Shown here in pieces: positions 37,909-43,738 of a stretch of 64,000 bases of DNA. A program made the translations under genes and the position numbers. The stretch comes from Auanema rhodensis (lineage: Eukaryota > Animalia > Nematoda): NCBI GenBank assembly GCA_964057225.1, contig OZ059898.1, forward strand, positions 12,214,001 to 12,278,000, in the 5' to 3' direction. Under the pieces are notes generated by a model, which was not told where the DNA came from, did not search any database, and saw only the letters and a program-made list of their open reading frames with translations. Numbering within the stretch: position 1 is the first letter of the stretch; each line of letters starts with the position of its first letter.

Positions 37909-39275
37909 TCATTGCAAGAAGTGGGAACCAGAATGCCATAACTTTTCCAAGTATTCGGGAGAGTGACGAGAATATTGGTAATGATAAACTACAAAATCCG
38001 AAAAAACGTGTTTGTCAAACCCATCATGATGTATTTGATGAAGTGATATACAATTTGTAATCAAACCTAAAAAAAATATGCATTCCGTTTTCTGGAATAT
38101 TGTAGTTGGAACATACCTACGAAAATATCATCCAAATGAACAAAAGGAACTTTGCAAACGTTTTCTAATAAAAGGCGAGCCCCTTCACGGGAAAGAATAA
38201 ATGATGATCCCTGAAATAAACTATGCCAATAGAATTGAATACAAGAATTACTTGAGTAAATCTAGGATAGCACAAGTTAGGATACATATCTCCAGGAACA
38301 TGCCAGGGTAGCCAGGGCATGAACAAACGCGGATACCCTCGCGAGACTTTACCAATTATCCAAGGTGATGTAGGAGGCAATGGCCTTTTTAACTAAGAAA
38401 ACAATGTCATTAACATACATACGTATACACAAACATTTCTCAAAGCTTCGGCATTTACTATTGTATCATCGTTTATAACAATTATTTCTTGTACTGTAGG
38501 TAATTCGCGAAGCACGAATCCATATATTGCCATCATTTTCCAAGATAAATTGTGATATGAATCCGCGAACTCAAACTGTAGGATGTCTATAAATAGAAAA
38601 TTGTAATAACTATAGAAATATTTTAATAAATTACCTTCATATTCTTTAGCCTCCATTTCTACATCTGTTCTTGTTGACGTTGCGCACACGAAAATCACAG
38701 GAGCATAGGGGGCCACCTTAGAATATATTTTAACAGTTATGTCAACTTATATATTACTTTTGGTTTCCACGTGTTTCGTATGAAATTACGATAATTCAAA
38801 GAGCCGGGTCCCGTTCTTATCACTAGTACTCTATCCAATTTCTCAGGTAAGTTTGGACGAATGAGCACTCTAGGAGGAGTGGACAGCTGACAGTCAGGGT
38901 TCGGCTGACGCTGGGGAAAAAAACGAGACAAACCTAATTGCATTTATATTGGAAAAACAACCAAAAAAACTACTCTTACATGTACCAAAATCTTTAGATA
39001 ATGGTTCTGGAGACAATAAATCAGATTGAGTATAGCATAGAAGCCGAAGAGGCAGAAGAGATCGCTCGAGATAGTTAGCTAGCTGTAACCTGTTTTTGAC
39101 AGATGTTGGATTTGAAACTTTTAATGCTACTCTCAAGAATTAAATGTAAATGTGAACTTACAAGTAAGTAGGGTAAAATCCAAATAAATTGTAAGATTAG
39201 AAGTTTACATGGCGAAGGCGTTAACCGATTCGACGACAATATCAGAACGCCGGGTGATAATGCCCAGCTAGGCAT
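37909..39275 (-). CDS. GT31 beta-1,3-galactosyltransferase family protein
   Basis: N-terminal hydrophobic anchor, RNFIRNTW, DILQFEFADSYHNLSWKM, INDD, GSSFILS, LDDIFVG. Start codon less certain. Confidence 0.87.
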
Positions 39276-40520
39276 GAAATATTCCAAAAGTTCCTACGGA
39301 AGTCCGACAGAAAAAATAACAAAAATAAAACTTTTATTCTGTTTAAAAATATAGGAGCTCTTCTCTTGAACTGCTGCAAAACGGTAAAAAAAAAAGGAAT
39401 TAATATAAAAGAGAATTAAAATAAAAAGCAGTGAAAACTTTAGTGAGATCAAGAGAAACAACATGACTTCTACTATTATGGAATGTGGACGTCTGAGAGA
39501 TGTGACGTTTCATCCAGGACTTCGATTTCGCAGATTCTAATCTCCTCTGTTCTTCTTCACGTACCTTCGTTACACATAATCAGCATGATCTATAAGAAAA
39601 GTCAATACATTTCCATACTAGGTTCTAAATTCTGAATGTCCTTTCATCGACCTATTTCTGACCTCAACCGTTATATACCAAAGTCTCCTTACCTTTTTGA
39701 GATCACGAGATCTCAGGGAAAAAATATTCAAAAAATTTGTTTTGCTGTGTTGATGCTACTTAGTTTCTATGCTGACATTAAGACTTTAATCGCTATAAAT
39801 TCGTTCTAATTAAGTAATTGATAGAATCACATGCATATTATGTCATGAGAAAATAGAACAATGTTCAAGAGAAAATATACAAAGCAACAATAGGTAATCA
39901 GCAAATTCCCAGAGAATCCTCGAAAAAGTTTCATAGAAAGCAACAGAAGATGTTTCAACTATGTTAGGGGTTAGCGTAAAATTAGCATATTTCGTGAAAA
40001 AAAGATTTTAAATCATAAGGAAAAAATAAGGAACTGTTGTCGCATTTGATTTACCGGTTGCTATATTAATAAGATTTTTAAAGAGAACTTGGTAAAGAAA
40101 ACCTTATAACAATTGTTGTTTTTTTTCACTTTCTTTTGTAATTCAACTTCAACTTGTTTCTTATGTTTGGTATACACCAGCATATTTTAAAAATTTCAAT
40201 TTGTTGAGTTCAAACGTTTTCAGTAGTTTCAAAAATAAAAATATATACATGATATATTTCCAAGTTTTAATAACAATTGTAACTAAGAAATGTAATAGTG
40301 CTCATTATTTTAAACATCTTACTATTCTTACATACACTGGTTTGAAGTGCGCCCCAATGTGACTACGGGTCCCACGAAGAATTTTACCATGACAATGCAA
40401 CTACTTGATCCCCAGTTCGTCCTAAAATATATTATTTCATATTTTCTGGTAGTTCTTGATTGAAGTTTAACTTTGGTTTTTATGTTTATAACTTTTGAAA
40501 TTTATAGGTAAATCACCGAG

Positions 40521-41124
40521 ATGGCTGCTGCTACTAGCTCCAAGAAGACTCAGGTATGTGTTTGTTACTTCTGGAGTTAATCGTAAGGCTGAGAAGGATC
40601 CGAGATCTGGAGTCTGTTATGATTAATTGAGAAGGGAGTAGCATTCCAATTCAATAATGAACGGCTCATGACTTGGCAATCTTGTCAGTTCTTGTACGGA
40701 ACTTTGTAATTCGTTATTTGGTTTTTGTGATTTGTTTCTAAGATTTGTGTTTTCAGGTCAAGAAGAATGCCGAGAACATTAACTCTCGTCTTTCCATGGT
40801 CATGAAGACCGGAAAGTACGTCCTCGGATACAAGCAAACCCTTAAGACCCTCCGCAACGGAAAGGCTAAGCTTATCCTTATCGCCAACAACACTCCTCCA
40901 CTCAGGTTTGATCTTAGTTTATGAATCTTTGCATATCTCTTTCATTTAGAAAGTCCGAGATCGAGTACTACGCTATGTTGGCCAAGACCGGTGTTCACCA
41001 TTACAATGGAAACAACATTGAGCTTGGAACCGCCTGTGGTCGTCTCTACCGTGTCTGCTCCCTTGCTGTTACCGATCCAGGAGATTCTGACATTATCCGT
41101 AGCGTCCCAACTGAGACCGCTTAA
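40521..41124 (+). CDS. rpl-30: 60S ribosomal protein eL30
   Basis: [65 protein letters not shown]; 3 exons, intron 1 is 40554-40756. Confidence 0.98.
40563..40643 (+). promoter_or_regulatory. Intronic RNA hairpin with two kink-turns (candidate eL30-binding element)
   Basis: Hand-paired stems with two copies of the bulged strand UGA-GAA-GG opposite CU-GGA-G; see finding. Confidence 0.8.
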
Positions 41125-41462
41125 GGCAAATAATTGTTATTTGTTGTTATTCCAATGAATTTTTTCGTTGATTATCTTGTTTTATAATTTTCTGGCTTGC
41201 CTAAAAATGTCTGGCCGTATTAAGTGCATAAGGGGGTGCCTGGGAGACATTGCACTTCAGGATTGCGATAGTTTCAAAGTTGTTAGAATTTGACAATTTT
41301 ATTTTTGACGAAACGTTGCGCCTGATTATGATATCGTATATAGTATTATCAGTGATGATTGAAAAGGTCTTTGATATAAGGGGCCGAGTGTAATGTTTCT
41401 ACAGCTTCGCTGGACGCTGTATCCTTCATTCCATTCATTGTGCTGTTCGTGTCTTAGCTGCC

Positions 41463-42533
41463 ATGTTTAGAAAGATCTCAACGATGCGATCAAATCGTCT
41501 TCCTTTCATAATCGGTGTGGCCGGTGGAACTGCTTCGGGAAAGGTAATTCTTAATAGTTTCCTTGCGCAGTTCATATGTCCTTTAGTCTCTTGTAACGGA
41601 AAAAATAATGGAGCGATTGGCTGATATGCAGAGTAGGAAGAAACAAGTTAGTTTTACATTATTGTATTTAAGTGCATTGTCTTATAGGTGATTATTATTC
41701 CATTGGAATCATTTTACAAAGAGTTGAACGAGGAAGATAAAGCTAAAGCCTTATCAGGAGATTATGATTTTGATCACCCTTGTACTGTTTCCTTCGCCTA
41801 CTTTTTATAATTCTAATCTTTGCAGCTGCCTTCGATTTTGATTTACTCCTAAAAGCTTTAGAAATGTTGGAGAGCGGGCAGCCTGTTGATATTCCAAAAT
41901 ACGATTTTATCGAAAGTAGAAGGTGCTATCTCAGATATTATAACTTCAGAAAACGCTGTTACGGACATTTTCTTTTAGAAAGGGGTCAATTCATCTGGAA
42001 CCTGCAGATGTCATAATCGTTGAAGGCATTTTGATTTTCTACGATGAACTGCTTCGAAATAAATTCTCGATGAAACTGTTTGTTGATGCCGACGCCGATA
42101 TCCGGCTTGCTAGACGAGGTTTGTTTCTGTAATGGTTTTTAATCTTCAAAAGATATTTTTAGTACGTCGTGATACTGTTGAGAGGAAGCGGCCATTGACC
42201 ATTGTGTTACATTCTTATACCAAGAGAGTGGGTTTTGTGTTCAATTAATGAAAACTTTTCTGTGCTATAGGTTAAACCAGCATTTGAAGAATTTTGCCAG
42301 CCTACCAAGAAATGGGCTGATGTCATTATTCCGCGAGGCGGAGAAAACGATATTGCTATTGACCTGTTGGTTCAGCATATCCAGGTACTTCTTTGATAAG
42401 TTTCTCATTCAAATTTAGAATGTTCTTGTAGGATCTTCTTAAAACACCTAGAGGGAGTCCAGACATATCTAGTAAACGTAGTTCGATCGATGAAGGTTCT
42501 GAGGTTGTGAAGTCAAGAGGAAGACCCCATTAA
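41463..42533 (+). CDS. Uridine-cytidine kinase
   Basis: [75 protein letters not shown]. Confidence 0.95.
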
Positions 42534-42894
42534 TACGATCACTTAGTAAAAATTACATTTTGACATATTGTTTCATCTGGTGACTTTTCTTCGCTTTAAA
42601 AATAATTTATGATCAATCATACTGGGCAGTATTCAATTGCATAAACTTCGACTTGTTGAATTTATCCGATTTTGTCTTTCTAGTTCAGAAATCATTTCGA
42701 TTTAAAAGATATCATTGCTTTAAGGGCATTAGGAATGCGTATATTTACTCGTGGATTCCTGTTGAACATTTGCATTAATAAACATTTATACAACATTTTC
42801 ATGAACTGTAAAAGTGTCTGGAAGATACACCAATTTATATTTTCGACACCAGGAAAGAAATTTGCATTAGATTGTGAAATACATTTCTACTTAG

Positions 42895-43738
42895 ATGGAT
42901 AGGATGGAACTGGGACCTGACGGTAAGCCTTGCCGGGCTTGTGTATCAGTGGAGGAAATGATGAAAAAGGGAAGAGAATTAGCGGAGAAAAAACTGAAAA
43001 GTTCGTCAATGTTCTGCTTATTTTCGAAAACCATTTATTTTTTGATGAGGGAGATAAAGCACCTAAGGAAGATATTGCAAAGCAACCATATTCTTCCACA
43101 AGTAGTGACCACCAAACAAACTGCCCTGTGGACAAGGATGAATTAGGTGATTATTACTCGAGAAGCATGATGAAATATTGAGATTAGGAAGGTCAACGTG
43201 GAATTTGCTGCATACTATGAGTGTGTATTACCCTGAGGCGCCTACAGAACAAAAAAAGGCGGAGACCGCTAGCTTTTTACAGAACCTTTCTCGAGTATTC
43301 TACGAGCTAGTCCTTCAAAAGCTATATCATAACTGTTTTACAGACATACCCATGTGACGTTTGTGCTAAAGATCTCCAGCAGGACTTGAAGGATGAACCT
43401 CCAAAATTAACAAATAGAACTGAATTTGCCAATTGGATGTGTCGTCTTCATAACAAAGTTCGTTTTCTTTTTTTTCTCCGATATTTTTGGTTTAAATGTT
43501 TATCAAAACAATTAAGTAGATAAGGCATCTATTCAGCATTTTCTCTTTAGTATTAGTTTAATGTTATTAGTTTAAGCGTAACCCTCTGTACAAAAGTGTG
43601 ACAACACAGTACTATTAAAAAGCTTTTTTCCTTGCGAGTTTTCAGGTCAATGACAAACTTGGAAAACCAGAGTTTGATTGTGCCAATGTATTTGAACGTT
43701 GGAAGGACGGGTGGAAGGATGGCAGCTGTGATTTTTGA
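42895..43738 (+). CDS. GFER: ERV1/ALR FAD-linked sulfhydryl oxidase (mitochondrial intermembrane space import)
   Basis: [61 protein letters not shown]. Confidence 0.96.

Follow-up and report, generated by a model that had tools for sequence, protein, structure and literature searches.

A conserved double kink-turn in intron 1 of nematode rpl-30, a candidate eL30-sensing splicing switch

The rpl-30 locus and the hairpin in its first intron

We analysed a 64-kb stretch of Auanema rhodensis DNA (assembly GCA_964057225.1, contig OZ059898.1, positions 12,214,001 to 12,278,000; hereafter the window, in whose own numbering all positions are given), which carries on its + strand the gene for ribosomal protein eL30 (rpl-30), and in the first intron of this gene a hairpin that we consider a candidate autoregulatory element. 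The gene runs from an ATG at 40521 to a TAA stop at 41122-41124 and comprises exon 1 (40521-40553, whose translation gives the first 11 residues of eL30), intron 1 (40554-40756, 203 nt), exon 2 (40757-40905), intron 2 (40906-40949, 44 nt) and exon 3, which ends at the stop codon. Both canonical joints (40553^40757 and 40905^40950) occur in an RNA contig from run X2; the first skips 203 nt with GT..AG ends, placing the proximal, productive 5' splice site GUAUGU at 40554-40559 and the 3' splice site of intron 1, UUGUGUUUUCAG, at 40745-40756. The long first intron of rpl-30 had been noted in an earlier reading made without database searches (hereafter the sequence-only reading), and it was borne out. 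Over its C-terminal part the protein shares 88% identity with RPL-30 of Caenorhabditis elegans and C. briggsae, its C-terminal half matches the eL30 chains of solved ribosomes with E-values of ~1e-30, and the closest locus that we found is that of Auanema sp. JU1783.

The hairpin (81 nt, 40563-40643) starts 9 nt past the productive 5' splice site and comprises two back-to-back kink-turns, which share one canonical (C) helix and occupy opposite strands of it. From the base, an outer non-canonical (NC) helix of 10 bp, three of them G.U (5' strand 40563-40572, pairing with the 3' strand 40634-40643), leads to the outer kink-turn, in which GGA of the non-bulged strand (40573-40575; nucleotides 3n, 2n and 1n) lies opposite GAA (40631-40633) of a bulged strand (40628-40633) that begins with the loop UGA (40628-40630). 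The shared C helix (5' strand 40576-40589, 3' strand 40612-40627) is composed of an 11-bp segment with two G.U pairs (40576-40586/40617-40627) and a GGC/GUC segment (40587-40589/40612-40614), with a 2-nt bulge UG at 40615-40616. The inner kink-turn has the loop UGA (L1-L3, 40590-40592) followed by GAA (1b-3b, 40593-40595) on its bulged strand (40590-40595) and GGA (40609-40611) on its non-bulged strand, and it is capped by an NC stem-loop (40596-40608) in which GGAUC pairs with GAUCU (40596-40600/40604-40608) around a CGA loop. Every one of these pairings had been listed in the sequence-only reading, and the minimum-free-energy fold of 40558-40648 (91 nt) reproduces the same double kink-turn architecture at -30.0 kcal/mol (z = -3.8; one shuffle in 200 does equally well); intron 1 folded as a whole showed no unusual stability relative to shuffles (z = 0.1).

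The claim that the two kink-turns use the same motif sequences was likewise correct: the 64 kb of the window contain the CUGGAG...UGAGAAGG pair two times (0.01 expected), and both occurrences of the pattern CTGGAG-N(8-20)-TGAGAAGG in the window sit in the hairpin. An Rfam scan of 38000-43000 at E ≤ 10 gave no match over the hairpin and no relevant family, the nearest matches being on either side of it, at 40441-40531 (snoR64a, 20.6 bits against a threshold of 45 bits) and 40672-40775.

Conservation and covariation among nematodes

Loci of rpl-30 were fetched via their proteins from C. briggsae (L001, L011/12), C. angaria (L003), Auanema sp. JU1783 (L004), Mesorhabditis spiculigera (L005/6), C. 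elegans (L007), five further Caenorhabditis assemblies (L008-L010, L013-L015), Ancylostoma duodenale (L017), Toxocara canis (L018), Trichuris suis (L086) and Dirofilaria immitis (L087); we regard GCA_000143925.2 as C. brenneri, and GCA_010183535.1 and GCA_000149515.1 as C. remanei. Owing to an assembly gap over exon 1 and intron 1, the H. polygyrus locus (L002) was left out. Our comparison revealed the double kink-turn in rpl-30 intron 1 of all of the fetched nematode loci except those of Trichuris and Dirofilaria, in the shared arrangement CUGGA(G/U) ... N-G-N-GA(A/U)-GG ... CYGGAG ... N-G-N-GAAGG. In the 13 sequences that were aligned (the window and 12 other loci, one of them the metagenome contig L028) the CUGGA motif of the outer kink-turn always begins 13-17 nt past the intron 1 donor, and the outer NC helix begins 6-9 nt past it. 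Folded alone, each sequence gave a helix, an asymmetric loop, a second helix, an asymmetric loop of the opposite sense, and a stem-loop. The corresponding hairpin of C. elegans is at 830-916 of L007.

A covariance model built from the 13 sequences has a single match in the window (40561-40649, 68.6 bits, E ~2e-18) and scores all 13 nematode loci at E ≤ 3e-12. In the model alignment standard pairs fill 91.0% of the cells, compared with 75.4% in column shuffles, and 18 of 26 pairs have changes on both sides; neither value was reached in any of 500 shuffles, and sliding the partner by 1-3 columns lowered pairing to 28-53%. When only eight lineages were kept, 89.3% of the cells were paired (73.1% in shuffles) and 17/26 pairs retained both-side changes. 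RNAalifold on the plain MAFFT alignment recovered the same shape with compensatory changes in 16/25 pairs. By region, the outer NC helix (helix 1) has 91.5% of its cells paired and both-side changes in 7/10 pairs; the two parts of the shared C helix (helices 2 and 3) have 90% and 95% of their cells paired and together show such changes in 10/13 pairs. In the MAFFT alignment and the model derived from it, the window and Auanema sp. JU1783 are offset by one column around the inner kink-turn, so the covariation counts are slightly conservative; the tabulation of kink-turn cores below was anchored on the CU-GGA motifs and not on the alignment, which avoids this. Between the window and Auanema sp. 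JU1783 the hairpin is 83% identical and the following 62 nt of the intron 31% identical, a difference that may be counted as a sign of selection for the hairpin.

The cores themselves are nearly invariant. All 26 kink-turns (two in each of 13 loci) have a 3-nt loop, GGA on the non-bulged strand and GA on the bulged strand, so that the standard kink-turn signature of a 3-nt bulge followed by G.A and A.G pairs is present at the sequence level in both motifs at all 13 loci. Loop position 2 is G in 26/26, loop position 3 is occupied by A in 20 kink-turns, by C in 5 and by U in 1, and the 3b.3n pair is A.G in 18 and U.G in 8, never U.U or G.C; the overall consensus is YY-GGA-(G/U) opposite N-G-(A/C)-GA(A/U)-GG. 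The outer kink-turn (loop UGA at 10 loci, CGA, AGA and UGU at one each) has GAA at 1b-3b opposite GGA in all 13, followed by an invariant 4n.4b U.G and 5n.5b C-G in the NC helix. In the inner kink-turn the loop is UGA at 5 loci, AGC at 5, AGA at 2 and CGA at 1, and 1b-3b reads GAA at 5 and GAU at 8; GGA and a C-G pair at -1b.-1n are found in 13/13. The C helix abuts the bulge through this C-G pair in the inner motif and through a pair, mostly G.U, in 12/13 of the outer ones, and the NC helix continues past the G.A pairs with positions 4 and 5 of both motifs paired in 13/13; the apical part of the inner NC stem-loop varies among species (e.g., GGA-GUAA-UCC in Caenorhabditis). The conservation and covariation on which the sequence-only reading had staked its proposal are clear, and both motifs are conserved, covarying kink-turns, with the sheared pairing and the kink itself predicted from sequence.

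Transcripts and alternative donors

If the proximal donor is not used, translation from exon 1 runs into an in-frame TAA at 40578-40580 (position 25 of the intron), and a candidate distal, unproductive 5' splice site, GUAAUU at 40706-40711, would leave an intron of 51 nt; both had been predicted correctly. RNA contigs of this organism bear on these possibilities. In run X2 a contig (depth 3.8) reads continuously from exon 1 across the hairpin as far as 40700, and in X3 a contig with the same course ends at 40707, at a depth of 54 compared with 1272 for the exons (~4%), with essentially no cover over 40708-40753. The end at 40707 is the point at which a 40705^40757 product and unspliced RNA diverge, because both continue with GT. 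A contig of a third run, X1, starts at 40568, crosses the 3' splice site and continues in exon 2; it is intron retention or pre-mRNA. This pattern is what distal-donor use plus some retention would give. Of the transcripts anticipated in the sequence-only reading, RNA that keeps the intron (X1, retention or pre-mRNA) was found; a 40705^40757 joint was in no listed contig.

The GUAA of the distal donor aligns with the sequence of Auanema sp. JU1783, and in Auanema, Mesorhabditis and Elegans-group Caenorhabditis there are candidate distal donors that lie 48-58 nt ahead of the 3' splice site. The features expected of a premature-termination-codon isoform in those nematode ribosomal protein genes that are controlled by alternative splicing and nonsense-mediated decay (NMD) are all found here, namely the in-frame TAA, the contigs reaching to the distal donor, and the higher identity of the hairpin (83%) than of the adjoining intron (31%).

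Regulation of C. elegans ribosomal protein genes by alternative splicing and NMD was reportedly described by Mitrovich and Anderson in 2000. For rpl-30 itself, Takei (2016) found a smg-2-specific isoform with a premature termination codon (LC006014), making it one of eight ribosomal protein genes with this type of control, and the alternative intron is 68-84% conserved within Caenorhabditis; the cis element and the ligand were left undefined in that work (PMC4937301). The productive fraction of rpl-30 was raised by knockdown of rpl-30 alone and lowered by knockdown of each of the other seven ribosomal protein genes tested, including rpl-7A (PMC4937301), and later work used rpl-30 as a model NMD target (PMC12129023). 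The appeal of the sequence-only reading to unproductive splicing of genes for ribosomal proteins in C. elegans can accordingly be extended to rpl-30 itself (PMC4937301). NMD sensitivity of the rpl-30 isoform is known for C. elegans only (PMC4937301, PMC12129023), and negative feedback of eL30 on its own splicing was likewise reported in C. elegans (PMC4937301); the contigs described here show that hairpin-containing transcripts exist.

Two further donor-like sequences were seen. In Elegans-group Caenorhabditis the distal donor CAAU|GUAAGC lies in the loop of a small hairpin (~930-960 of the C. elegans locus L007, and the same place in L008, L011 and L013), the stem of which seems by eye to covary (GUGC/GCGC, GCUC/GAGC, GUGCU/AGCAC). 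Separately, the 3' strand of the outer NC helix holds a donor-like GGA|GUA(A/G)C in most species (GGGA|GUAGCA at 40636-40643 of the window, with equivalents in L004, L007, L011, L013, L015 and L017), which would be masked once the helix forms and whose use was seen in no contig.

Candidate ligands of the kink-turns

All proteins of the L7Ae family recognise tandem G.A pairs that follow a 3-nt bulge (PMC5061560), and they differ in the base that they accept at loop position 3: in the pocket for this base Snu13/15.5K and L7Ae show a strong preference for U, whereas the pocket of yeast L30 prefers A or C and tolerates G, binding of U not having been shown (PMC1874613). The 3b.3n pair is U.G in the kink-turn of the yeast L30e pre-mRNA and A.G in Kt-58 (PMC5061560). 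L30 binds the kink-turns of helix 58 and of its own pre-mRNA via an aromatic residue (F85 in yeast, Y89 in rat) that its RNA binding requires (PMC3706390), and the window eL30 keeps the aromatic residue at this place, in GRLYRV. In the nematode element L3 is A or C in 25/26 kink-turns and 3b.3n is U.G or A.G, a pattern that, set against the published specificities, fits the eL30 type and not the Snu13 type. We infer that eL30 is the direct ligand of the hairpin and that two eL30 molecules occupy it.

We consider it unlikely that the kink-turns are instead bound by another L7Ae-family protein (SNU-13/15.5K, NHP-2 or eL8/RPL-7A), by which rpl-30 splicing would be tied to spliceosome or small nucleolar ribonucleoprotein supply and not to eL30. 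The whole family does recognise the bulge and tandem G.A pairs found here (PMC5061560), and 15.5K on intronic K-loop RNAs represses host-intron excision in mammals (10.64898/2026.08.03.742641); however, the U at L3 favoured by Snu13/15.5K/L7Ae (PMC1874613) is found in 1/26 kink-turns only, 3b.3n is never the U.U or G.C of C/D-box and U4 sites, and the element lies in the eL30 gene itself in every species. In addition, the productive fraction of C. elegans rpl-30 rises solely with rpl-30 knockdown and falls with the others, and its fall upon knockdown of rpl-7A argues against eL8 as the ligand.

Slightly less probable still is that the hairpin acts without protein, its fold alone tuning donor choice or splicing kinetics, with the rpl-30 feedback exerted elsewhere or indirectly. 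Kink-turns with A.G at 3b.3n fold in metal ions without protein (PMC5061560), and Takei et al. did not commit themselves to a direct or an indirect feedback (PMC4937301), both of which would suit such an explanation. On the other hand, unpaired bases that the fold does not need are kept (L2 is G in 26/26 and L3 is A or C in 25/26) and match the preference of L30, and the 3b.3n pair of the inner kink-turn is in most species U.G, as in the protein-bound yeast site.

That the hairpin is processed into a stable small RNA of intronic origin (snoRNA-like or ktRNA/klRNA) with a function unrelated to eL30 dosage is very improbable, since, for all that long first introns of ribosomal protein genes often host snoRNAs and two kink-turn motifs resemble a C/D plus C'/D' layout, the hairpin has no RUGAUGA or terminal CUGA box pair, no Rfam match at E ≤ 10 and no single-stranded guide region (the segment between the motifs being a covarying helix), and the RNA contigs that cover it run on into exon 1 or exon 2 with no discrete piece. 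Membership in the box C/D snoRNA or 15.5K-bound klRNA/ktRNA family was rejected for the absence of a C-box/D-box kink with U at L3.

A proposed eL30-sensing splicing switch

Based on the eL30-type consensus, the conservation, the transcripts and the rpl-30-specific feedback in C. elegans, all of which support the autoregulatory splicing switch proposed in the sequence-only reading, we favour, with a probability of roughly 70%, the interpretation that the intron 1 hairpin is an eL30-sensing switch that sends its own pre-mRNA to the distal donor or to retention and then to NMD. When eL30 is made faster than ribosome assembly uses it, free eL30 would bind the kink-turns, likely one molecule to each, and fix the kinked hairpin against the proximal donor, which would be used less, presumably through steric block. 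Splicing would then take the distal donor at 40706, or the intron would be retained; either transcript would carry the in-frame TAA at 40578 into NMD, and eL30 output would fall. The direction of this proposed feedback agrees with the C. elegans rpl-30 knockdown result (PMC4937301). The hairpin is thus probably the missing sensor by which surplus eL30 diverts its own pre-mRNA to a transcript that is destroyed.

A number of observations weigh against this interpretation. With regard to structure, the outer -1b.-1n pair, usually C-G in standard kink-turns, is a G.U wobble in 9/13 species; Toxocara has an imperfect outer kink-turn (loop UGU, G.A at -1, and an interrupted C helix); and the helix between the two kink-turns ranges from 7 to 16 nt per strand across species, from which it follows that a fixed two-protein geometry is not conserved and not required. 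As for transcripts, the RNA evidence comes from four small runs of one study with spliced rpl-30 contigs, none from NMD mutants, and contigs give no isoform ratios; the 40705^40757 joint is absent among the listed RNA contigs of this organism. The sole candidate distal donor of C. angaria lies 96 nt upstream of the 3' splice site, and near that site of one Caenorhabditis assembly (L015) no distal donor is clearly recognisable. Finally, neither a kink-turn motif nor a covariance-model match was found in intron 1 of Dirofilaria immitis (L087, 1518-1706) or Trichuris suis (L086, 4260-4428), in both of which this intron is at the same codon position as in the element-bearing species, so that the switch would be dispensable in some nematodes. 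The element is present in Rhabditina and the one ascarid examined (Toxocara), and is absent in the one filarial and the one trichinellid (clade I) genome examined.

The balance of C. elegans rpl-30 by unproductive splicing and NMD has been known since 2016. For the cis element behind it the hairpin offers a well-defined candidate that lends itself to mutation, with four short invariant motifs within 81 nt, by which the mechanism becomes directly testable in a genetic model. A kink-turn is mentioned in neither PMC4937301 nor PMC12129023, and we found no paper linking rpl-30 to a kink-turn or K-turn in the searchable literature, the coverage of which leaves out subscription journals; the statement of the sequence-only reading that it knew of no description of such a tandem K-turn stands within that scope.

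Comparison with known regulatory kink-turns

The closest counterpart is the site in Saccharomyces cerevisiae RPL30 (the L30e-bound pre-mRNA/mRNA of PDB 1T0K), which similarly lies in eL30's own transcript and adjoins a 5' splice site. Both have a 3-nt loop, tandem G.A pairs and A or C at the pocket position, the U.G at 3b.3n of the yeast site recurs in 8/13 inner kink-turns, and in both the outcome is negative feedback on splicing, which for nematodes is proposed here. The strand order of the outer kink-turn is also that of yeast, with the non-bulged strand first, the bulged strand second and the NC helix by the 5' splice site. Where yeast RPL30 has one kink-turn, the nematode hairpin bears at its tip, as the inner kink-turn, a second copy in inverted orientation. 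Both nematode kink-turns are intronic, and so, unlike the yeast site, which spans the 5' untranslated region (UTR), exon 1 and the donor, the element is unable to act on mature mRNA. The likely nematode output is distal-donor use or retention plus NMD, compared with a block of spliceosome assembly plus translational repression in yeast. It is supported that the nematode element is new relative to the yeast autoregulatory kink-turn in being doubled, intronic, and coupled to 5' splice-site choice and NMD.

Other systems share parts of this design. As in the L10ARE of C. elegans rpl-1 (PMC4937301), a conserved element sits between two alternative donors, the unproductive isoform goes to NMD and the feedback is gene-specific; the L10ARE, however, is a sequence of 39 nt to which L10a binds and whose conservation extends into mammals, whereas the rpl-30 element is a structured double kink-turn. 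The archaeal L7Ae 5'-leader kink-turn (PMC5539422, PMC6298567) is likewise a case of an L7Ae-family ribosomal protein repressing its own gene via its own transcript, but it acts on translation, through a single kink-turn and a different protein, without splicing. The 15.5K-bound klRNAs/ktRNAs (10.64898/2026.08.03.742641) are intronic kink-type motifs that repress host-intron excision; their terminal C (RUGAUGA) and D (CUGA) boxes, binding of 15.5K, processing into stable small RNAs and occurrence in mammals are features none of which applies here. The element connects the classic yeast L30 circuit with animals, and the comparison suggests that eL30/kink-turn feedback is very old and that its read-out was rewired, 5' splice-site choice and NMD taking the place of blocked spliceosome assembly and translational repression. 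If, as is probable, its two opposed kink-turns bind the same small protein, the hairpin would make a compact natural two-site ribonucleoprotein switch, one that also bears on the L7Ae/kink-turn devices of synthetic biology.

Single kink-turns in RPL30 loci outside nematodes

A scan of metagenomes with exon 2 gave 67 RPL30 loci, only one of which (L028) has the double kink-turn. Several non-nematode loci among these metagenome sequences have a single kink-turn with the consensus YY-GGA opposite N-G-N-GA(A/U)-GG in the 5' UTR. Five protist-like loci share YU-GGA-UUCC ... GGGA-AG(A/C)-GAA-GG (L037, 47-78; L046, 44-72; L038, ~254-300; L040, ~39-85; L043, 49-79), ~45-50 nt before the AUG where measured (L037, L046), and the nematode covariance model matches L037 with E = 2e-4. 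In three others GAC-UGA-GAA-GG ... CU-GGA-GUC lies just before the donor of a 5'-UTR intron (L019, 91-151; L020, 669-729; L022, 357-417), and a further single kink-turn is at ~1400-1480 of L021. The fungus-like L052 has ACC-GGA-GUGU ... ACAC-AGA-GAU-GGU (181-213) around an AUG, which we take to be the layout of the yeast RPL30 site; its strand order is that of the outer nematode kink-turn. A strict automatic kink-turn finder did not separate the strands of these loci (5 loci on the gene strand, 5 on the opposite strand), and the single kink-turns are accordingly a lead that rests on inspection of their position and recurrence.

We tentatively speculate, as a scenario that we hold somewhat doubtful, that kink-turn feedback by eL30 is ancestral or widespread in eukaryotes, and that in nematodes the sensor was transferred to intron 1 and gained an inverted duplicate, making a two-site, possibly cooperative switch. 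Trans-splicing in nematodes, by leaving a 5' UTR of ~13 nt, would be the reason for that move. In the window the probable trans-splice acceptor is UUUAUAG at 40501-40507, and the spliced X2 contig starts exactly at 40508; the mature mRNA would probably begin there, with a 5' UTR of 13 nt, if trans-splicing takes place as we infer. So short a 5' UTR after spliced-leader trans-splicing could explain an intronic sensor in nematodes. If the scenario is true, the two-site switch would select between two 5' splice sites, and the yeast circuit would be no peculiarity of yeast.

Additional observations

One sequence that came up in the searches, L016 (Logan ERR15726719), was considered as a C. elegans allele without both rpl-30 introns and was rejected on comparison with L007: its neighbouring pab-1-like gene is also intron-free and its flank diverges before position 632, from which we conclude that it is an RNA-derived contig joining two divergent transcripts. 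Many public nematode eL30 models (e.g., P0125, P0127, P0128, P0129, P0122 and P0124, from strongylids and Caenorhabditis) contain spurious sequence, either as N-terminal extensions or as insertions where exon 1 meets exon 2; gene prediction seems to run on into the long, regulatory first intron. Just downstream of rpl-30, an RNA contig of run X1 (1235 nt) is antisense, covering 41202-41400 on the - strand of the window; the gene neighbouring rpl-30 downstream is transcribed convergently.

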